Positions 384 through 12,748 of a stretch of 12,748 bases of DNA are shown here, piece after piece. The notes under the pieces were generated by a model. It did no database searches and was not told where the DNA came from. It worked only from the letters and a program-made list of their open reading frames with translations. The DNA is from Trichoplax adhaerens (taxonomy: Eukaryota; Animalia; Placozoa): contig NW_002061051.1 in assembly GCF_000150275.1 (NCBI RefSeq), forward strand, positions 1-12,748. The letters run 5' to 3'. Numbering within the stretch: the first letter of the stretch is position 1; each line of letters opens with the position of its first letter. The position numbers and the translations under genes were made by a program.

Positions 384-900
384 TTATTGTAATTTCATTT
401 GTATATTATACCATGGCAATTTACCAAAGTTTACTGAAGATGAGCCGACGCATTGAAACCCTACTTTCTCATAAAAATGATATTAGATAGTCATGAGCAA
501 CTAAATTAATAAGCACAATATCTGGAAAATTCTGCTTAATATAAGCTGTATAGTGATTGACCATGACAGACGCGATACCCTTGCGTTGAAATTTTTCGTG
601 GATGCATACAGAATGAATGCAGAGATATTTTCCACCAGGTATATGTTCATACATAGATTGAAAAGTTAATAAGTCATCATTACTCCGTGTACCACAGATA
701 TGACCAATTACTTCGCCATCTATTACGAATACAAGGAATAATTCCTTAGCTGCATTAAATCGGTCTCTAAGTTGCTTGGCAGAAGCTGGTTCGCCTTCTG
801 GAAATGATTTTTGTTCTGTTTGACATACAATATCAAAGTCTTCCTCGATAATCTGGCGTATATTAGCCTTATAAAGACCTTGTACGTGTATAGGTTCCAT
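384..900 (-). pseudogene. GNAT N-acetyltransferase, AANAT / polyamine acetyltransferase (yeast Paa1)-like, with a 1-nt frameshift (pseudogene, null allele or sequencing error)
   Basis: The ORF 900->469 has GNAT features of this subfamily: EQKSFPEGEPAS near the N-terminus and the acetyl-CoA motif A CIHSVCIHEKFQRKGIA. It stops at LVAHDYLISFL*. Removing one T from the T5 run (A473-477 on +) gives ...DYLISFYEKVGFQCVGSSSVNFGKLPWYNIQMKLQ* (stop 386-384). This restores GNAT motif B (FYExxGF) and a 171-aa protein. Confidence 0.85.
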
Positions 901-1204
901 GTTTCTTATCTAAAGTTGAGCAATGATAGGTTTAACGTTAAATTTTTAAAAATTGCTAGGATAACATTTACTACCGATATATACAGTATTACATTAGAAC
1001 TCTTATTTGACAGGTATGGTATACTTTCTTTCGGATTAAATTACGCTCTAAAATGTGTCTTGCATAGCGGTTTAATTAAATTTGGAAATTTTTTGAAGGC
1101 TCTCTATATATCGGCTACCGTTGCTGTGATTTGGGATAGTACCATTTTGCTAACTTTAGCAAATAGAACAAATTTAAACGAATTGAAGTAAGCGAGATCT
1201 TAAA

Positions 1205-3580: not shown

Positions 3581-5628
3581 CTATCAATAAAAAAAGTAAG
3601 ATTAGCTAAACAAAGGTGATCTTTTGCATTTAAATAAATGTAACCTAAATTGAATAAAAGATGAAAATGATCATTTAAAATATTAAATGTTGTGATTTCG
3701 CAGAATTTTTATTCATTCTTTTTTGGATTATAACGCTAAACTGTTATAATTTATTACTAACGAAGTAACGATGGCAAGGTTTATCGTAAAGCTTTCATGG
3801 CAAAATATACAGTATTAACGTTTATTTACGATATTTATAGTAATATATTGATACATTGTAAGTGATGATCTATCTATATCTCTATACTTACCAACTGAAA
3901 TGATTTGCAAAGATTGACCACAAGTATATTGATTAAACTTGCATTATTTTCTGGTTTGCAACGCATTTGCAAACATTTTTAAATTATAATTATTTGAGAT
4001 TTAGTTGAGTAATGTAGTTTAACATCGCAAACAATTCCTCAACCTAGACCTCCTTTTCCTTAATATAGCATAAGTACTACCATTTACAAAAGAATTTATC
4101 CTTAATTGTGATTCAGTACTATACTATTTTATTGTGATCAAGTTGCTGTAGGTTAATAAAATATACAGGTTATTAGAATCATTTTCCTAAATTGCTATTT
4201 TACCACTATTATGGCCATAAATTAAAACATGATTGAATAATAGAACTTTAGAATAATGTAGCAAGTAATTTTATAAATCAAAAGATATTGGTTACTTAAT
4301 GACATTAATGTGATGGAATATTGTTGGCAGCGAGAATAATGCCATGAATGATATAATCAGTTACTTTATTTTAAAGAGAAAGAAATGAAATTGAAATTTT
4401 GTAGAAATACTTAAAACAGTTTTATATAATTGAAACTGCATAGATCAAATGGATATCAACGTTTCTACATGATAGCCCTCCACGATGAAAGACACATCCT
4501 TATTGTTTCAAAAATATATCATAAAGAGATTTTATTTAATGGCGTTTGACTTAATTTTATTACTCGTAGTAATATTAAAAATTTAAATATTTATATTTCC
4601 TGGTTTGGTAACAAATTGTTCTGATTTAAATAGGCCAAATAAGAAATACTATAATAACAAAATTAAATAGATTTCTACATTGGTACTATCATTAGATGAT
4701 AGTTTAATCGTTGTCATGATACTTATCTGAAATTTGGATATTTTAAGTTTCTAAGTTAACAATGTCTCTTGGGTTAGGCCAAAACACAGCCAGATGTTGC
4801 CATCATCAAATGCTGAAGTAGATAAAACACTTGGCAAGACTGTTTATGAGGTAGAACATGGGCAAGTAGCAAAATTTACTCCAAGGAAACTAGAACATTT
4901 GAAAACAAGTGTGATATATACCAATCACGAGATTCCAAATTTTAGAAAAATAAGGGCTTTATTAAATCTTATACAAAGATTAACTACACACAGCTCTACT
5001 CTAGCCGCATACTACTACTAAAGACTTCTACAACGAACTAACAGAATAATCTAAAGTTGCATGCTTTTATACTTTTCGTAGCATTCGCAGCTACAATCCG
5101 CATAGCAACCTTTTACCTTATATTACACATAGTTAAATTATTCTTAGTAAGACTATTCTACTGCGGACCATCATTAATCCAATATGGATACGACTACAGT
5201 ACTTACGTAGACATTATTCACTCCAGCCAAAGTACAATGAATTAACCACATCCTAATATATGATTTACAGTTCTATTTTTACGTATAGCCTTATTAGTAA
5301 CTCAACAGCTTACTGTATATAGTCATCTGTACTCTAGCATAGAATCTATACCACTACAGTCTATAGTTATGACTACCAAATATCTCTTAAGATAAATATC
5401 TACCGTACGTTATACTAAACATGGCTAACAGTCTACAATCACAATACTAGTTCCATTACACCTACATAGTATCGACTTCGTCGATATTGATCATCTTGTA
5501 AATTTGGCATTCTAATATCAGCTAATAAAGGGTAAATCGATCGTTTTCGGTACTAATCTGCTGATAACTTGTGTATATGAAAATTGAAATTGATCTGTAA
5601 TACTTACATGCAATCAGTAGTAATATAT

Positions 5629-6216
5629 TGTCACAACCCTCACTTGTGGCAAAGGAAAGTAAAGAACTCTAGTGTAGTTACTTAAAACTTGGGCTATTTC
5701 TCCCAGTACTTTCAGTTTCTATGAGAGAAGTATTTGAGAACTCGATTTCTCGGCTGATCTCCACAGACAACTGACTAATTATTACACTATTCTTCACGAT
5801 ATGAGTCTTGCCGTTTCTTGAGCAATTATTTTTTTTATTCTACAAACACACGCGCTTAAATAGGTTTCTACAGTGAATTCCAATATTAATGAGTGAGAAT
5901 TCATGCTTTACAAGTTACATTAATTAGTATAATACCATTACTAAATATACATGTCGATATCCTCAGACTTAGATAGCTACAAGCTATCAGGTGTTAAGAC
6001 GCTTAACCTTCGTCCATATACAGCTCAATTTTTAGAGATTAACACAACTTATAAACCTACAGTAAATTAACTGCTAACAACTTCTATTTTTATCTCATTT
6101 CTACCATCCTATTATCAGCTACAAGCGCATTAAAACATAGCACATAACCTTATCTTATCTATTCATAAGCATTCATTAATTTACAGTTACTTAATTAGTA
6201 ACGGCGTACCGTGACA
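5629..6216 (-). mobile_element. Solo-LTR-like element (588 bp)
   Basis: It has a perfect 6-bp terminal inverted repeat TGTCAC...GTGACA and an identical 5-bp flank TATAT on both sides (5624-5628, 6217-6221). On the minus strand a TATA-like CCTATTTAAG (~5864-5855) is followed by AATAAA (5839-5834). Confidence 0.7.
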
Positions 6217-8282
6217 TATATATGCTAAGATTATCCTGCGTTTTGTGTTGATTGATTATATTATTAATTGGATCCGTTCAAAATTCTTAACTAATGGTCT
6301 TTGAAACTCATATTAATGTTATTGACTACAGGCAATCATGCTAGGATCTATCTTGCTGTTGTAGCATTATACCGTTGTAGCTATTGTTTTTATTTTAACG
6401 GGGATAAATTTTAGAAGTCAGTGTATGAACAGCAAAGTATGAAGGTAATAATTCGGAGTAGCATAGTTACAAATCTGTAGTAAAGGACTAAAAGCGCAGT
6501 CCTTTACAGCTTTTAGTATGAAACTATTATTATTTTACTATAGAAAATACCTAGAAAATGATAGTATCTTTAAGGTTTACCCTGCCAAATCATGATGTCG
6601 CTATCTTTTCTTCTTCGCTATTTTACAAGGTTTTGTATAGATTACTATAGGAATGACTTAAGAGCAATTGCCTAATCTAAAGAAAGGGCGTTTGATAGTC
6701 TATTGAGAATTTAAATGAGTTGACTACATCAACTGCCAATACTAACGTCAGAGAAGCAGTCATAGTTGTCGTATAAAATTTTTTGATAAGCAAATATGTG
6801 ATTTTATTAAAATTCGGAATTTTTGGATTCAGTTTCCGTCGACCGTGAGGGCTCTGCAAACCGTGACTATAAATGATAGTGCAATCAGAAAATTTAGAGT
6901 AGAGAGTAACAGAAGATGGTTTTGAAGAATTTGTTGAATTTTAAAGACCTTCGGGGTCGAACTTTGTAAGTGAAAACGTTCTTCTTTTGTTAGGTTGTTC
7001 AGTTATTGACAGCTTTAGTTCTGTCGTTTTTTCATTATTTCTTCACTTACAATACTAAGGATTAAGTATCTGAAAGGTTGTTTGATCTATCTCACTCACA
7101 TTTATTAATAAATTGTTGTTCGGTTGTTTCTGCAATTTTTATTTGGTATCATAGTTTCGTTAAGTCGACCAGGGGCCACGAAAGTAGAATCAAAGTTTGT
7201 TCAAAGTTTTTTAGCTTGATCTCTACATTTTACATTTCATAACAGATCCATTTGTACGTAATATTCCTATCTTATCTCTATAATATCGCAATATTAGTCT
7301 TTCCATATTATTGTGATACAGACCAGATCTATAACAAAATAACGAGAAGGCTGAATGTACAAATCTTATCCCTGAGCCACGTATCAGGGCACTAAATCTC
7401 TTTAAGTAGCACTTAAGAACACTTATCCCTAATTTTACGGATAGATAATAATTCGTCCCTCTCCTTCATCCTCGATTTCGCGTTATATAAAAGACAGCTA
7501 TCTCGGATGGTAAAACAGAAAAACTTCATTAATATATAATGATGAATGATTATATTGTAGTTATAGCATGTATTATGCTCAAAACTGAAAATATGAACAA
7601 TATGCCGCCAAATCGACTGTCGACGCAAAAATAAATTAACATTTGCAGGATTATAATAAAATAATGTTGATTATACTTAGTAGAATTATAAGGCAATGAT
7701 CGTAAATAATTGAAGTTACCCAATATTCTTTGAGTAGAATTTCTCTAATTGATGAACTGTATAACAAAAATGTTTAACATTAATTTATCAAGCCATTAAG
7801 CCAATTTACGAAGTAATTAATATGATAGCAAATTTATGCTTAACACTACATTTTAATTATTCAATACTATTGTTATGCTAATGAGTAAGCTTCTATTTAT
7901 ATTAATAGCGATGACGCAGGTTATTGATATTGAAAAATAAATAAATAAAGAGAAGTAAGTTATGGAAAGAATGTCTTCGCGCTTTCAATCTATTACGGCT
8001 TCGTTAATATCAAAAAATAATTTACCAATAATTAGAATTGATGACCGTTGACTTCTTAGGGCGTATCCAATTTGGCCGATTTGAGCACACTGTGAACTAG
8101 CATAGATTTTGAAATCTTGACATTAAATAGAAGGCATCAGTTTGGCCCAATCATATACTGTAAAGACGATTGCGATAATCAATCGCATCTCTATTAAAGT
8201 TGCAACCTCTACCGATTAAAGTACTGGTGTTTATTTCCCCCAAATTACTGTGTATGCTTTCAGTCTTGTTATAAACTGAAAC

Positions 8283-11200
8283 ATGGCGGCATATGAGTCC
8301 ACAAAATTGACTATCATCGATGAAACTGAATCTATCCACAAAAAAGGTGCGAAATGCTTTGAAGAAGGCAATTATGAACAAGCCCTATTACATTACAAAG
8401 AAGCTGCTACTCAAATCCAATCTATGTCCAAGAATAGTAATAATAATTATGACCATCAACTTGAATGCGATATTTATCTCGACATAGCCGATTGTTATTT
8501 AAGCCAATATAAACTGATAGAAGCCGATAAATGGAGAAGAAATGCGAAGAAATTAGCCGAGCAACCACAAGATAGAGTGAGAATTGCAAAGTGCTTTGAT
8601 AGGCAAGGGTGTATTAAACAATTGCAAGGTGATTTGAATGGAGCTTTAGAAGATTTTAACAAATCACTTAGAATAAAATCAGAATGGTCAGAAAGTGAAG
8701 ATATCAATATTAGTGAGTCTTATCGTAACATTGCAAGTATTTATGGCAATCAAGGCAAGTATAATGACGCTCTATCGATGTATAACAAATCACTGAAGAT
8801 TAAACTAACACAACTTGGTGACAATCATCCAAGTATTGCTGTAACTTATACAAATATTGGGCAAGTCTATAAAGATCAAGGCAAGTATGACGACGCTCTA
8901 TCGATGTGTAACAAATCACTGAAGATTCAACTAACACAACTTGGTGACAATCATCCAAGTATTGCTACGACATATCACAGCATTGGTGGTGTTTATTATC
9001 ATCAAGGCAAGTATGACGACGCTCTATCGATGTATAACAAATCACTCAAGATTGACCTAACACAACTTGGTGACAATCATCCAAGTGTTGCTGTAACTTA
9101 TACAAACATTGGGCAAGTCTATAATGATCAAGGCAAGTATGACGACGCTCTATCGATGTATAACAAATCGCTGAAGATTAAACTAACACAACTTGGTGAT
9201 AATCATCCAAGTATCGCTACGACATATCACAACATTGGTGGTGTGTATAAAGTTCAAGGCAAGTATGACGACGCTGTATCGATTTATAACAAATCACTGA
9301 AAATTGACCTAACACAACTTGGTGACAATCATCCAAGTATTGCTACGACATATCACAGCATAGGTGGTGTCTATTATCATCAAGGCAAGTATGGCGACGC
9401 TCTATCAATGTATAACAAATCACTGAAGATTAAACTAACACAACTTGGTGACAATCATCCAAGTATTGCTGTAACTTATACAAATATCGGGCTAGCCTAT
9501 AAAGATCAAGGCAAGTATGACGACGCTCTATCGATGTATAACAAATCACTGAAGATTCACCTAACACAACTTGGTGACAATCATCCAAGTATTGCTGTAA
9601 CTTATACAAATATTGGGCAAGTCTATAATGATCAAGGCAAGTACGACGACGCTCTATCGATGTATAACAAATCACTCAAGATTAAACTAACACAACTTGG
9701 TGACAATCATCCAAGTATTGCTACGACATATCACAGCATAGGTGGTGTCTATTATCATCAAGGCAAGTATGACGACGCTCTATCGATGTATAACAAATCA
9801 CTGAAGATTAAACTAACACAACTTGGTGACAATCATCCAAGTAATGCTACGACATATCACAGCATTGGTGATGTCTATTATCATCAAGGCAAGTATGACG
9901 ACGCTTTATCGATGTATAACAAATCACTCAAGATTAAACTAACACAACTTGGTGACAATCATCCAAGTAATGCTACGACATATCACAGCATTGGTGGTGT
10001 GTATGAAGATCAAGGCAAGTATGACGACGCTCTATCGATGTATAACAAATCACTGAAGATTAAACTAACACAACTTGGTGACAATCATCCAAGTATTGCT
10101 ATGACATATCACAACATTGGTAGTGTGTATAAAGATCAAGGCAAGTATGACGACGCTCTATCGATGTATAACAAATCACTGAAGATTAAACTAACACAAC
10201 TTGGTGACAATCATCCAAGTATTGCTACGACATATCACTACATTGGTAGTGTGTATGAAGATCAAGGCAAGTATGACGACGCTCTATCGATGTATAACAA
10301 ATCACTGAAGATTAAACTAACACAACTTGGTGACAATCATCCAAGTATTGCTACGACATATCACAACATTGGTAATGTGTATAATGATCAAGGCAAGTAT
10401 GACGACGCTCTATCAATGTATAACAAATCACTGAAGATTAAACTAACACAACTTGGTGACAATCATCCAAGTATTGCTATGACATATCACAACATTGGTA
10501 GTGTGTATGAAGATCAAGGCAAGTATGACGACGCTCTATCGATATATAACAAATCACTGAAGATTCACCTAACACAACTTGGTGACAATCATCCAAGTAT
10601 TGCTACGACATATCACAACATTGGCAGTGTGTATGAAGATCAAGGCAAGTATGACGACGCTCTATCGATGTATAACAAATCACTGAAGATTCAACTTACA
10701 CAACTTGGTGACAATCATCCAAGTATTGCTGCGACATATCACAACATTGGTGGTGTGTATAAAGATCAAGGCAAGTATGACGATGCTCTATCGATGTATA
10801 ATAAATCACTGAAGATTCAACTAACACAACTTGGTGACAATCATCCAAGTATTGCTACGACATATCACAACATTGGTGGTGTGTATTATTATCAAAGCAA
10901 GTTTGACGACGCTCTATCGATGTATAACAAATCACTGAAGATTCACCTAACACAACTTGGTGACAATCATCCAAGTATTGCTATGACATATCACAACATT
11001 GGTAGTGTGTATAAAGATCAAGGCAAGTATGACGACGCTCTATCGATGTATAACAAATCACTCAAGATTCAACTAACACAACTTGGTGACAATCATCCAA
11101 GTATTGCTACGACATATTGCAACATTGGTGGTGTCTATTATTATCAAAGCAAGTATGACGACGCTCTATCAATGTATAACAAATCACTCAAGATTAAACT

Positions 11201-12748
11201 AACACAACTTGGTGACAATCATCCAAGTATTGCTGTAACTTATACAAATATTGGGCTAGTCTATAAAAATCAAGGCAAGTATGACGATGCTCTATCGATG
11301 TATAACAAATCACTGAAGATTCAACTAACACAACTCGGCGACAATTATCCAAGTATTGCTGCAACTTATACAAATATTGGGCTAGTCTATAATGACCAAG
11401 GCAAGTATGACGACGCTCTATCGATGTATAACAAATCACTCAAGATTAACCTAACTCAACTTGGTGACAATCATCCAAGTATTGCTACGACATATTGCAA
11501 CATTGGTAGTGTGTATAAAGATCAAGGCAAGTATGACGACGCTCTATCGATGTATAACAAATCACTCAAGATTCAACTAACACAACTTGGTGACAATCAT
11601 CCAAGTATTGCTACGACATATCACAACATTGGTAGTGTGTATGAAGATCAAGGCAAGTATGACGACGCTCTATCGATATATAACAAATCATTGAAGATTG
11701 ACCTAACACAACTTGGTGACAATCATTCAAATATTGCTACGACATATCACAACATTGGTAGTGTGTATGAAGATCAAGGCAAGTATGACGACGCTCTATC
11801 GATGTATAACAAATCACTGAAGATTAAACTAACACAACTTGGTGACAATCATCCAAGTATTGCTGCAACTTACAGAAATATTGGTCAAGTCTATAATGAT
11901 CAAGGCAAGTATGACGACGCTCTATCGATGTATAACAAATCACTCAAGATTCACCTAACACAACTTGGTGACAATCATCCAAGTATTGCTACGACATATC
12001 ACAACATTGGTAGTGTGTATCAAGGCAAGTATGACGACGCTCTATCGATGTATAACAAATCAATGAAGATTGACCTAACACAACTTGATGACAATCATCC
12101 AAGTATTGCTGTAACTTATACAAATATTGGGCAAGTCTATAAAGATCAAGGCAAGTATGACGACGCTCTATCGATGTATAATAAATCACTGAAGATTCAA
12201 CTTACACAACTTGGTGACAATCATCCAAGTATTGCTACGACATATCATAACATTGGTAGTGTCTATAAAGATCAAGGCAAGTATGACGACGCTCTATCGA
12301 TGTATAATAAATCACTGAAGATTCAACTTACACAACTTGGTGACAATCATCCAAGTATTGCTACGACATATCATAACATTGGTAGTGTCTATAAAGATCA
12401 AGGCAAGTATGACGATGCTCTATCAATGTTAAACAAGTCACTGCAAATTTCTTTAGTAACGCTAGGCGAGAATCATCTTCATACTGCCCAGCTGTATCGA
12501 AGCCAAGCTGTAGTCAATTATAAACTGTCGAATTATCGTCAAGCATTTTCATTATATCGAAAGTCCATTAACAGTCTACGCAATGTCTACGGAGAGAGTC
12601 ATCCTCAAATTATCGAAGATGAGAAACAAATTAATTACTGTTCCAATCAATTGCAAGAAAACGAGAAGGAGCCTTCTGCATTGGAAATAGCCAACATCAT
12701 TCGACAACTTCTGGCTCAATATGCAGACAATAAAAGAGTCATCGACAA
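8283..12748 (+). CDS. Large 42-aa TPR-repeat protein (kinesin-light-chain / nephrocystin-3-like repeat class), 3'-incomplete, at least 1488 aa
   Basis: The ATG at 8283 is in the context AACATGG, with an in-frame TGA at 8277-8279. It reads MAAYESTKLTIIDETESIHKKGAKCFEEGNYEQALLHYKEA... A 156-aa N-terminal region of divergent TPRs precedes 29 units of QGKYDDALSMYNKSLKIxLTQLGDNHPSIAxTYxxIGxVYxx, followed by divergent capping repeats and ...ALEIANIIRQLLAQYADNKRVID. I found no stop codon up to the window end and no signal peptide. Confidence 0.95.
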   Translation, partial: MAAYESTKLTIIDETESIHKKGAKCFEEGNYEQALLHYKEAATQIQSMSKNSNNNYDHQLECDIYLDIADCYLSQYKLIEADKWRRNAKKLAEQPQDRVRIAKCFDRQGCIKQLQGDLNGALEDFNKSLRIKSEWSESEDINISESYRNIASIYGNQGKYNDALSMYNKSLKIKLTQLGDNHPSIAVTYTNIGQVYKDQGKYDDALSMCNKSLKIQLTQLGDNHPSIATTYHSIGGVYYHQGKYDDALSMYNKSLKIDLTQLGDNHPSVAVTYTNIGQVYNDQGKYDDALSMYNKSLKIKLTQLGDNHPSIATTYHNIGGVYKVQGKYDDAVSIYNKSLKIDLTQLGDNHPSIATTYHSIGGVYYHQGKYGDALSMYNKSLKIKLTQLGDNHPSIAVTYTNIGLAYKDQGKYDDALSMYNKSLKIHLTQLGDNHPSIAVTYTNIGQVYNDQGKYDDALSMYNKSLKIKLTQLGDNHPSIATTYHSIGGVYYHQGKYDDALSMYNKSLKIKLTQLGDNHPSNATTYHSIGDVYYHQGKYDDALSMYNKSLKIKLTQLGDNHPSNATTYHSIGGVYEDQGKYDDALSMYNKSLKIKLTQLGDNHPSIAMTYHNIGSVYKDQGKYDDALSMYNKSLKIKLTQLGDNHPSIATTYHYIGSVYEDQGKYDDALSMYNKSLKIKLTQLGDNHPSIATTYHNIGNVYNDQGKYDDALSMYNKSLKIKLTQLGDNHPSIAMTYHNIGSVYEDQGKYDDALSIYNKSLKIHLTQLGDNHPSIATTYHNIGSVYEDQGKYDDALSMYNKSLKIQLTQLGDNHPSIAATYHNIGGVYKDQGKYDDALSMYNKSLKIQLTQLGDNHPSIATTYHNIGGVYYYQSKFDDALSMYNKSLKIHLTQLGDNHPSIAMTYHNIGSVYKDQGKYDDALSMYNKSLKIQLTQLGDNHPSIATTYCNIGGVYYYQSKYDDALSMYNKSLKIKLTQLGDNHPSIAVTYTNIGLVYKNQGKYDDALSMYNKSLKIQLTQLGDNYPSIAATYTNIGLVYNDQGKYDDALSMYNKSLKINLTQLGDNHPSIATTYCNIGSVYKDQGKYDDALSMYNKSLKIQLTQLGDNHPSIATTYHNIGSVYEDQGKYDDALSIYNKSLKIDLTQLGDNHSNIATTYHNIGSVYEDQGKYDDALSMYNKSLKIKLTQLGDNHPSIAATYRNIGQVYNDQGKYDDALSMYNKSLKIHLTQLGDNHPSIATTYHNIGSVYQGKYDDALSMYNKSMKIDLTQLDDNHPSIAVTYTNIGQVYKDQGKYDDALSMYNKSLKIQLTQLGDNHPSIATTYHNIGSVYKDQGKYDDALSMYNKSLKIQLTQLGDNHPSIATTYHNIGSVYKDQGKYDDALSMLNKSLQISLVTLGENHLHTAQLYRSQAVVNYKLSNYRQAFSLYRKSINSLRNVYGESHPQIIEDEKQINYCSNQLQENEKEPSALEIANIIRQLLAQYADNKRVID
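8751..12398 (+). repeat. Coding tandem array of 29 x 126-bp units (unit 26 is 120 bp), followed by a degenerate 30th unit
   Basis: CAAGGCAAG/CAAAGCAAG starts occur every 126 bp from 8751 to 11901, then at 12021 (6-bp in-frame deletion), 12147, 12273 and 12399. Confidence 0.97.

Follow-up and report, generated by a model that had tools for sequence, protein, structure and literature searches.

A tandem TPR array with hypervariable groove residues in Trichoplax adhaerens, probable recognition module of a Death-domain signalling protein

Introduction

An unplaced contig of the placozoan Trichoplax adhaerens carries a long array of TPR units that are nearly identical to one another except at a few residues, and it raises the question of what kind of protein such an array would serve. 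The window, meaning the whole stretch of DNA that was analysed (12,748 nucleotides, forward strand), is the entire 12.7-kb contig C1306 (NW_002061051.1), which ends inside the gene. Highly internally conserved (HIC) repeats whose binding residues are hypervariable are taken as a distinguishing mark of non-self receptors in fungi and in some bacteria. They are rare in animals, where they make up 0.8% of repeat proteins (Dyrka et al. 2014, PMC4986451), and hypervariable arrays are mentioned neither in the survey of Trichoplax ROCO genes (Civiero et al. 2014, PMC4104024) nor in that of placozoan immunity (Kamm 2019). A preliminary description of the window, made from its letters alone, had proposed a rapidly diversifying recognition protein, and the analysis reported here follows up that proposal.

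Results

Gene layout

The window contains the large first exon of a T. adhaerens gene, preceded by its promoter-proximal region. Forward frame +3 runs from 8280 to the contig end, 1489 codons, without a stop, while the other two forward frames hold 77 and 180 stops, and the chance of frame +3 staying open is about 1e-47. The features of the gene are as follows.

6222..8282, + strand: upstream region co-duplicated with the gene, putative promoter and 5' UTR (blastn)
8283..8750, + strand: start codon and N-terminal cap (N-cap), 156 aa, degenerate TPRs, family signature
8751..12398, + strand: 29 near-identical 42-residue TPR_12 units with seven hypervariable columns
11901..12020, + strand: unit 26, 40 aa, with an in-frame 6-nt deletion removing columns 41-42 (QGKY spacing)
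12147..12398, + strand: units 28 and 29, identical over 126 nt (identity 1.000)
12399..12748, + strand: C-terminal cap (C-cap), about 1.5 degenerate units and a conserved tail (Pfam TPR_12 E 9.5e-16)

Using blastn, a single alignment of 92% identity was obtained from window position 6222 into the array against the region upstream of a paralogue (C1402:509751-512369, minus strand), and further left of 6222 no match was found except at 5462-5625. The ATG at 8283 sits one codon past an in-frame stop, an arrangement that is the same in all paralogues, and annotated Trichoplax proteins share the start position of the N-cap, in which Pfam detects weak TPR_12 and TPR_2 matches. The N-terminus contains no hydrophobic stretch, which suggests a cytosolic protein. 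At the other end, the tail of the C-cap is 94% identical to C1402:509787-510093 and is cut by the contig end about 20 nt short of a conserved splice donor.

Repeat array and fold

TRF reported one array (8749-12443, period 126, 29.4 copies, 90% matches, no indels). With unit borders set at the Q of QGKY, 29 in-frame TPR_12 units were obtained, 28 of 42 amino acids and one of 40, the latter at the only site where the QGKY spacing is 40 rather than 42; the count and order of these units, which rest on an old shotgun assembly across a near-perfect 3.6-kb repeat, may be in error. Mean pairwise nucleotide identity of the units is 0.90 (amino-acid identity 0.81 with the degenerate end units counted), which places the array at the internal identity of about 85% or more by which HIC receptor repeats are recognised. 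Among the 25 family arrays compared it is the most homogenised, with a ratio of variable to scaffold entropy of 6.1, and units 28 and 29, judged by their identity, are its most recent duplication.

Only columns 18, 31, 34, 35, 38, 41 and 42 of the unit have an amino-acid entropy above 0.85 bit, and the remaining 35 columns stay at or below 0.57 bit. The seven variable codons account for 83% of the pairwise nonsynonymous differences between units and for 52 of 72 inferred nonsynonymous changes (binomial p 3e-25). Entropy and pairwise differences thus bear out the seven-column pattern of the preliminary description, whose 29 per-unit strings were reproduced exactly and whose numbering of the columns as canonical TPR positions 31, 2, 5, 6, 9, 12 and 13 proved correct in a HMMER alignment to consensus CTPR chains. 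Its statement that about 35 of the 42 residues are nearly invariant also stood; that this should hold even at synonymous sites was overstated, as variation occurs in 53 of the 126 nucleotide columns and the scaffold differs between units by a dS of 0.17.

The TPR solenoid that had been proposed is supported by Pfam, by structure prediction and by Foldseek. The match to TPR_12 has an E value of 2.5e-97 (319.6 bits against a cut-off of 30.1, six units), and TPR_10 and TPR_NPHP3 likewise exceed their Pfam cut-offs. AF2 with a 74-row alignment returned an all-helical model with two helices per unit (pLDDT 96.9), and a single-sequence structure run returned a beta-solenoid artefact. The top Foldseek matches were KLC1/2 TPR-peptide complexes, CTPR and LGN (probability 1.00), and the TPR domain of KLC1/KLC2 is the best match among natural proteins in both sequence and fold (E 1e-38; Foldseek E ~1e-13).

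Under HMMER alignment, column 18 corresponds to R327 of KLC1, column 31 to K340, column 34 to N259/N301/N343, column 35 to N302/N344/N386, column 38 to V305/L347, column 41 to R266 and column 42 to K309/N351. Taken together with the contacts that KLC1 makes to JIP1 and TorsinA cargo peptides in crystal structures (PMC6214655), this identifies all seven variable columns, by homology only, as peptide-contact positions. Similarly, HOP contacts its ligand through TPR positions 2, 5, 6, 9, 12 and 13 (PMC1261162), which are six of the seven variable columns, so the earlier placement of the variable sites at ligand-binding positions holds at the level of homology.

Gene family and Death exon

The N-cap has at least 125 matches in the genome, and the gene family numbers at least 100 clustered members with arrays of 14-36 units. 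The window belongs to a clade with C1293, two C1402 genes and C1384 that has 100/100 support in an N-cap tree and is nested there among ROCO-bearing members. In databases, relatives go by the names 'Nephrocystin-3' or 'Kinesin light chain'. N-cap, TPR, Roc, COR-A and Death are combined in P0001, P0016, P0022 and P0036; P0008 and P0010 share this order of domains with no Death match, P0006 has N-cap, TPR and Death, and the C1389 genes read TPR-Death-Roc/COR-Death.

No Pfam domain other than the TPR type was found in the window ORF. Downstream of three sister genes, at 1.7-2.4 kb, lies a Death exon (Pfam E 2.5e-13) whose acceptor, ttatag/AT in phase 1, is phase-compatible with the TPR exon, and the seven paralogues examined all keep the splice donor CAG/GTGA. 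Homology across the subfamily extends to the intron and Death region, and an identical acceptor is present in two further copies, at C1207 and at C1402:1.488 Mb, where no TPR exon was identified. Beyond the sister genes no COR-A match was found downstream, and a tblastn search with the Roc-COR portions of P0001 and P0008 recovered nothing in the 9.6 kb that follow C1402a. A ROCO protein was rejected on these grounds for the sister genes, which have no Roc/COR between the TPR and Death exons; the window contig stops before that region, and Roc-COR does occur in relatives further removed. An NLR or STAND receptor was likewise rejected, as the ORF contains neither NACHT nor NB-ARC and the genome's 43 NB-ARC matches all lie away from the subfamily.

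The contig ends before the donor, and the sister genes indicate that the window copy most likely also has a Death exon. The reading we favour, and consider probable, is that the N-capped array of KLC-type 42-residue units is the recognition module of a death-fold signalling protein, with four to five groove columns diversifying, in a clade without the central Death-Roc-COR exons. On gene structure, the window most likely represents neither a TPR-only protein nor an NLR, and would be the sensor exon of an NTPase-less TPR-Death receptor. The receptor reading of the preliminary description is therefore strengthened by the Death exon behind three sister genes, and its NLR-type affiliation is not upheld, there being no NB-ARC near the subfamily and no Roc/COR between the exons.

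The same region bears on a stand-alone TPR-only protein, whose Death exon is lost or unused and which acts as a decoy or sponge competing with Death-bearing paralogues or as a binder with no signalling output. Stops interrupt the Death exon in the C1410 and C1407 copies and the C1207 exon stops five codons early, so copies can lose it; no Death or COR was detected within 9 kb downstream in 34 of 39 long-array genes, where detection is a lower bound; and read-through of the donor yields a short conserved tail with a stop after 12 codons. Against this, donor and phase-1 acceptor are conserved despite divergence of the Death domains to 55% identity, and an intact Death exon is present in every one of the three nearest complete sisters, two of which lie on C1402 and the third on C1384. 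We regard a TPR-only protein as unlikely, though it is the best placed of the alternatives.

Selection and array turnover

Scaffold dN/dS is 0.096, and the scaffold of 35 residues per unit is, on this ratio, under purifying selection. At the variable codons dN is 0.52, about three times the scaffold dS of 0.17; when NG86 uses the local dS of these codons, the ratio is 0.92. Parsimony was also used to count changes over 98 unique units drawn from five sister arrays, with omega taken relative to a shared synonymous rate. Omega was 4.1, 2.6, 2.9 and 2.6 at columns 18, 31, 38 and 41 (p <= 3e-5), while column 34 reached 1.55 (p 0.04); these tree-based counts are inflated by inter-unit recombination. 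Columns 35 and 42 are near neutral, with omega not above 1. The expectation of dN/dS above 1 at the variable sites is thus supported at four to five of seven columns against the shared dS, and fails at columns 35 and 42 and under local NG86.

The sister paralogues have 15 to 29 units, none of them colinear. Units of the window could not be paired by position with those of the sister arrays, although N-cap dS is only 0.08-0.12, and only 0-2 groove strings are common to the window and any sister array.

These data can be set against an ordinary scaffold or adaptor TPR protein, a KLC- or nephrocystin-3-like housekeeping gene in which unequal crossing-over homogenises the units and the variable columns are the least constrained surface and play no part in recognising varied ligands. 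The names of relatives, the local ratio and near-neutral columns just given, and the observation that the same columns are the most variable in TPRs generally (PMC1261162) favour this explanation. It does not readily account for a dN at columns 18, 31, 38 and 41 of 2.6-4.1 times the shared synonymous rate, for convex-face and loop residues that are likewise solvent exposed and nearly invariant, for a large clustered family linked to Death and Roc-COR domains, or for complete array turnover between recent paralogues. Pfam gives only TPR-type families in the N-cap, array and C-cap; the heptad region of KLC and the N-terminal region of NPHP3 are absent, and orthology with either protein was rejected since the non-TPR parts of both are missing. 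The probability that we give a housekeeping scaffold is low, slightly below that of a TPR-only protein.

Integrity of the locus

Collapsed or chimeric paralogues, or a dying copy whose frame is open since its units are young, would make the locus an assembly artefact or a pseudogene. The window is a short unplaced contig ending inside a gene, C1293, C1003 and C1207 are similar fragments, of which C1003 repeats units 12-20 of the C1402:577k gene, and no annotated proteins matching the window subfamily were found. However, the N-cap and upstream flank differ from every other copy (85-89% amino-acid and 92% nucleotide identity), and the window is therefore a separate locus. Because unit dS reaches 0.17 yet scaffold dN/dS is 0.096, the units appear to have diverged under purifying selection, and the 1489 codons contain no stop. 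We consider an artefact or pseudogene improbable.

Modular code

TPR positions 2 and 5 coincide with the specificity positions of PPR proteins, and the geometry permits an extended ligand in the groove, as the array model matches LGN, the TPRs of which bind partner proteins, at TMq 0.79-0.84. The preliminary description had raised a TALE/PPR-like code, in which each unit reads one residue or nucleotide of an extended polymer; this we consider very improbable and it was not borne out, as seven positions vary rather than two, no small alphabet exists (the 29 units contain 28 distinct seven-residue strings and the 116 sister units 76 distinct groove strings, with helix-A positions strongly linked into unit types), the variable positions together carry a charge of -7 and column 42 is Asp in 20 of 29 units, unfavourable for nucleic acid, and the nearest structural relatives bind peptides.

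Discussion

We return to a recognition module joined to a Death domain, for which we infer the ligand and signalling role. The TPR exon would join the C-terminal Death exon in phase 1, the central Death-Roc-COR exons of the nearest ROCO-bearing relatives being absent. The array would evolve by duplication, loss and exchange of units that keep the scaffold near identical, and residues lining the concave groove would be kept different, four to five of them under diversifying selection. A superhelix of about 30 units may bind a protein or extended peptide in this groove. Column 35, mostly a conserved Asn, may hold the peptide backbone like the Asn pairs of KLC1, with the surrounding variable residues setting specificity. 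Clustering driven by ligand would in turn enable the Death domain to seed a death-fold assembly for cell death or immune signalling.

The closest known systems each share features with the array and differ from it in others. Like the HIC TPR arrays in NLRs of the fungus Podospora anserina (Dyrka et al. 2014, PMC4986451), it has 42-residue KLC-type units that are very highly identical to one another, variable sites predicted on the concave face that are in part apparently under positive selection, a number of repeats that differs (here among paralogues) and unit turnover by recombination. Unlike them, the gene carries no NACHT or NB-ARC, the array is N-terminal with a Death domain after it in sister genes, and the host is an animal; at 29 units the array is also longer than the 2 to more than 14 units sequenced in Podospora. 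The window clade has its N-cap and its kind of TPR unit in common with the TPR-Roc-COR-Death/CARD ROCO proteins of Trichoplax (Civiero et al. 2014, PMC4104024), and the C-caps and terminal Death exons of the two groups are homologous, whereas the clade has neither Roc/COR nor the inner Death exon between the TPR and Death exons, and its arrays are 2-5 times longer and far more homogenised (mean unit identity 0.78-0.81 vs 0.43-0.51).

KLC, unlike the window array, has six diverged TPRs and a heptad-repeat region binding kinesin heavy chain, and is conserved and single-purpose with no Death domain. The candidate NB-ARC-TPR and LRR-ROCO receptors of brown algae (Zambounis et al. 2012, PMC3341825) resemble it in shuffled 126-nt TPR units, signs of positive selection, a ROCO or STAND context and clustered birth-and-death families, but their units are separate exons that are shuffled or alternatively spliced, and all Trichoplax units lie in one exon, within which diversity arises. 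TALE and PPR proteins are likewise built of near-identical helical repeats in tandem, each of which carries a few specificity residues; the Trichoplax array differs in that its residue alphabet is not small, seven positions vary, its groove is acidic to neutral and its relatives bind peptides.

The gene therefore probably encodes a fast-evolving cytosolic receptor of a kind that is known from fungi and has not been described in animals. More tentatively, and with less than even confidence, we suggest that placozoans, which rank among the simplest animals, possess a germline-diversified cytosolic repertoire in which homogenised 42-residue TPR arrays with hypervariable grooves recognise varied peptides of symbionts, pathogens or non-self conspecifics and, in this clade, signal directly through Death domains with no NTPase switch. 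Such a repertoire would parallel, in an animal, the HIC-NLR sensors of fungi and would have arisen from TPR-ROCO-Death genes that lost their central exons. The near-identical units would constitute a natural library for the engineering of peptide binders. If this reading is true, the strategy of homogenising the scaffold and diversifying the groove arose independently on a death-fold signalling chassis.

The array and its seven variable columns

Contig C1306, which at 12,748 nt is the full window, is part of a 105.6-Mb assembly, and its frame +3 runs without a stop through the 1489 codons between 8280 and the contig end, a length with a chance of about 1e-47 given the base composition; the other two forward frames contain 77 and 180 stops. 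The ATG at 8283 lies one codon past an in-frame stop, an arrangement found in every paralogue. The parts of this frame are as follows.

8283-8750, + strand: N-cap, 156 residues of degenerate TPRs, the family signature
8751-12398, + strand: 29 TPR units, cut at the Q of QGKY, from which unit columns are counted
11901-12020, + strand: unit 26, 40 residues
directly 3' of unit 29, + strand: a degenerate unit 30

Tandem Repeats Finder detected a single array at 8749-12443 (period 126, 29.4 copies, matches 90%, indels 0). All units but unit 26 (28/29) have 42 residues; unit 26 is missing columns 41-42, the final two residues of helix A, a gap that should shift the superhelix register locally or else could be an assembly error. 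The per-unit residue strings of the preliminary description were reproduced exactly for 29 of 29 units, and variation does concentrate at seven columns, as amino-acid entropy rises above 0.85 bit at columns 18, 31, 34, 35, 38, 41 and 42 alone and is at most 0.57 bit at the remaining columns. These seven codons account for 83% of the pairwise nonsynonymous differences and for 52 of the 72 inferred nonsynonymous changes (p 3e-25). That the other 35 columns (the scaffold) are invariant even at synonymous sites was overstated, with 53 of 126 nucleotide columns varying and a scaffold dS among units of 0.17. Strong linkage of the helix-A positions with one another and with neighbouring synonymous sites sorts the units into types, for example V-T-N-Q/L, T-H-S-G-Y-H and T/M-H-N-S-K/E-D; column 18 assorts freely against the helix-A positions, with all four gametes found.

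Fold and groove mapping

Pfam TPR_12 matches six units with 319.6 bits, and AlphaFold2, supplied with a 74-row alignment built from eight-unit windows of 25 family arrays, returned an entirely helical model (pLDDT 96.9) with helices at unit columns 4-22 and 27-42. A beta-solenoid obtained by AlphaFold2 from the single sequence of 8283-9884 (pLDDT 70; 70-85 in the repeats) was rejected as a perfect-repeat artefact on the strength of this alignment-based model, and single-sequence structure predictions for perfect repeats should be treated with caution. Foldseek matches included KLC1/KLC2 TPR-cargo complexes, consensus-TPR superhelices and LGN/Pins, the last spanning all eight units with a TMq of 0.79-0.84.

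HMMER alignment to consensus TPR chains places the seven columns at canonical TPR positions 31, 2, 5, 6, 9, 12 and 13, in agreement with the preliminary description. Positions 2, 5, 9, 12 and 13 lie on the concave face and are among the most variable (Magliery and Regan, PMC1261162), and HOP grips its peptides through positions 2, 5, 6, 9, 12 and 13 (PMC1261162). The proposal that these residues line a binding groove is supported by homology: in a mapping that combines the HMMER alignment with the KLC1-JIP1/TorsinA structures (PMC6214655), all seven columns align to peptide-contact residues of KLC1 and are predicted to face a ligand. The Asn pairs of KLC1 form hydrogen bonds to the peptide main chain (PMC6214655), and Asn occupies column 35 in 23 of the 29 window units.

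Table. Unit columns and the KLC1 peptide-contact residues to which they align
Column 18: R327
Column 31: K340
Column 34: N259, N301, N343
Column 35: N302, N344, N386
Column 38: V305, L347
Column 41: R266
Column 42: K309, N351

Family members and the Death-domain exon

The N-cap has at least 125 genome matches, which are clustered, and in a protein search covering 1.84 billion representatives the N-cap-bearing matches came from Trichoplax adhaerens or Trichoplax sp. H2 in all eight cases looked up. The annotated relatives have one of two layouts, in which the N-cap and TPRs precede either Roc and COR-A, mostly with a Death domain, or a Death domain alone. The Trichoplax ROCO genes listed by Civiero et al. 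(PMC4104024) number at least 17 and carry TPR, CARD and Death domains.

Table. Domain content of annotated relatives
P0001, P0016, P0022, P0036: N-cap, 4-8 TPR units, Roc, COR-A, Death
P0008, P0010: N-cap, 4-8 TPR units, Roc, COR-A; no Death match
P0006: N-cap, TPR, Death

The N-cap gave no match in word-index protein searches over two length ranges, nor did four paralogue ORFs in exact protein look-ups, and the array as a protein query returned only generic TPR_12 proteins at an identity of at most 58%, so that the window subfamily has no annotated model. A first reading as a TPR-only family, based on Pfam matches of the large ORFs, was abandoned once the annotated relatives and downstream exons were found.

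A splice donor, CAG/GTGA, is present 13-30 nt upstream of the large-ORF stop in seven of seven paralogues examined, and the window contig ends about 20 nt upstream of the donor position. With TPR and Death exons searched separately, three sister genes (one on C1384, two on C1402) were each seen to be followed on their own strand, at a distance of 1.7-2.4 kb, by an exon encoding an 84-residue Death domain (Pfam E 2.5e-13) with the acceptor ttatag/AT. The exon phases match, with one base remaining at the donor and two coming from the acceptor (G + AT = Asp). Two more Death exons (C1207 and C1402:1.488 Mb) have the same acceptor, with no adjoining TPR exon identified, and homology of the intron and Death region extends throughout the subfamily. 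Among solved structures, the Death domains of ankyrin and FADD are nearest to this domain, both as weak matches. Neither COR-A nor Roc was found between the TPR and Death exons of the sister genes, no Roc/COR remnant in the 2.4-kb intron of one C1402 sister gene (C1402a), and no NB-ARC near the window subfamily. C1207 was rejected as the continuation of the window, as the overlaps reach only 96-98% identity, are mixed in orientation and include one dispersed repeat.

Some Death exons are disrupted, each behind a TPR ORF that is open:

C1207:7275-7526, - strand: stop five codons ahead of the usual end
C1410:8189500-8198000 (local 647-888): internal stops
C1407:936500-942500 (local 5442-5651): internal stops

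The decay of the C1410 and C1407 copies favours a rival reading in which the protein is a TPR-only decoy; the three sister genes with a phase-matched Death exon stand on the other side.

Origin of the clade

The nearest ROCO-bearing relatives are a tandem pair of genes, each with four large exons in the order TPR, Death, Roc-COR, Death:

C1389:264000-273700, - strand
C1389:277000-285900, - strand

Their TPR array exons measure 741-848 codons and their Roc-COR exons 737 codons, and their final Death exon resembles that of the window clade. The N- and C-terminal stretches of the Roc-COR exons are near-identical between the two genes and the TPR exons far less alike, a pattern that suggests exon-wise exchange. 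In the N-cap tree, C1293 pairs with the window, the two C1402 genes (100/100) and C1384 join this pair in turn, and the resulting clade is nested among ROCO-bearing members. The simplest reading of this tree, the root of which is uncertain, is that the window clade would have lost the central exons of a ROCO-type gene.

Other features of the window

472-909, - strand: 146-codon open frame, GNAT-type acetyltransferase (Pfam Acetyltransf_1, E 4.7e-11), probably an exon of an adjoining gene
1399-1731: 87-nt tandem repeat, 3.8 copies, matches 73%, AT-rich non-coding DNA
5626-6221: dispersed repeat of about 590 nt, an insertion relative to the paralogous C1402 upstream region

The dispersed repeat had 186 candidates at first look. 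Scoring of 40 other copies gave 98-99% identity for every one, which suggests a young, non-autonomous mobile element of high copy number; no clear terminal inverted repeats could be seen in it.

Selection on the variable columns

By NG86 over all unit pairs, scaffold dN/dS was 0.096, and the variable codons had a dN of 0.52, roughly threefold the scaffold dS (0.17), with a local dS of 0.57 and hence a ratio of 0.92. Parsimony counting in the manner of SLAC, which covered the 98 unique units of the five closest arrays and took omega relative to a shared synonymous rate, gave 4.1 at column 18, 2.6 at 31, 2.9 at 38, 2.6 at 41, 1.55 at 34, 1.3 at 42 and 0.7 at 35, and a local binomial test gave p <0.005 at columns 18, 31 and 38. 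Because recombination among units inflates such counts, the diversifying selection proposed in the preliminary description was graded, being supported at four columns, likely at a fifth and not shown at two, with the local ratio of 0.92 also weighing against it. A less likely rival reading is a housekeeping scaffold in which the surface positions would be relaxed.

Turnover of the arrays

The window array is the most homogenised of the 25 family arrays (mean unit identity 0.81, variable/scaffold entropy ratio 6.1); mean unit identity falls to 0.30 across the set and is 0.43-0.51 in the C1389 ROCO genes. Columns 31 and 41 are within the seven most variable in 25 of 25 arrays, and 38 and 42 in most. 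The groove strings of the sister arrays (76 distinct in 116 units) share only 0-2 with the window, and no colinear units were found between window and sister arrays despite an N-cap dS of 0.08-0.12. Unit identity within the window array showed no higher-order periodicity and no decay with distance (permutation p 0.06). A recently amplified set comprises units 11-16, 18, 22-23 and 28-29, of which 28 and 29 are identical. The consensus units of four sister arrays differ by 1-6 nucleotides. Inter-locus gene conversion is not needed for this likeness, since dS between units (0.17) is higher than N-cap dS between paralogues (0.04-0.12), and shared ancestral unit variants together with local duplication and loss explain it.

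The groove strings of C1003:1-4170 match, in the same order, units 12-20 of the C1402:577k gene (C1402:574000-582500); C1003 probably represents either a redundant haplotype or a duplication in the assembly, and both arrays contain N gaps. An assembly artefact or a pseudogene is a further, unlikely rival for the window array, the unit number and order of which come from an old shotgun assembly; its open reading frame speaks against this rival.

A predicted recognition module

A code reader of TALE/PPR type, suggested in the preliminary description, is disfavoured, because the 29 units carry 28 distinct seven-residue strings, with no small alphabet, and the variable positions sum to a net charge of -7. 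Fungal NLRs have highly internally conserved (HIC) TPR arrays of 42-residue units that are polymorphic in repeat number and under positive selection at sites of the concave face, and HIC repeats were found to be rare in animals (PMC4986451); in brown algae, 126-nt TPR exons are shuffled (PMC3341825). A survey of placozoan immunity does not treat the window's TPR family (PMC6321704), and the literature searched held no account of hypervariable TPR arrays from placozoans.

The window protein, the N-terminus of which has no hydrophobic stretch, is taken as a predicted cytosolic recognition module. With about 30 units, its superhelix would offer a groove for a protein ligand or an extended peptide, and in the sister genes this recognition module is coupled to a Death domain; the ligand, clustering and downstream signalling are inferred.
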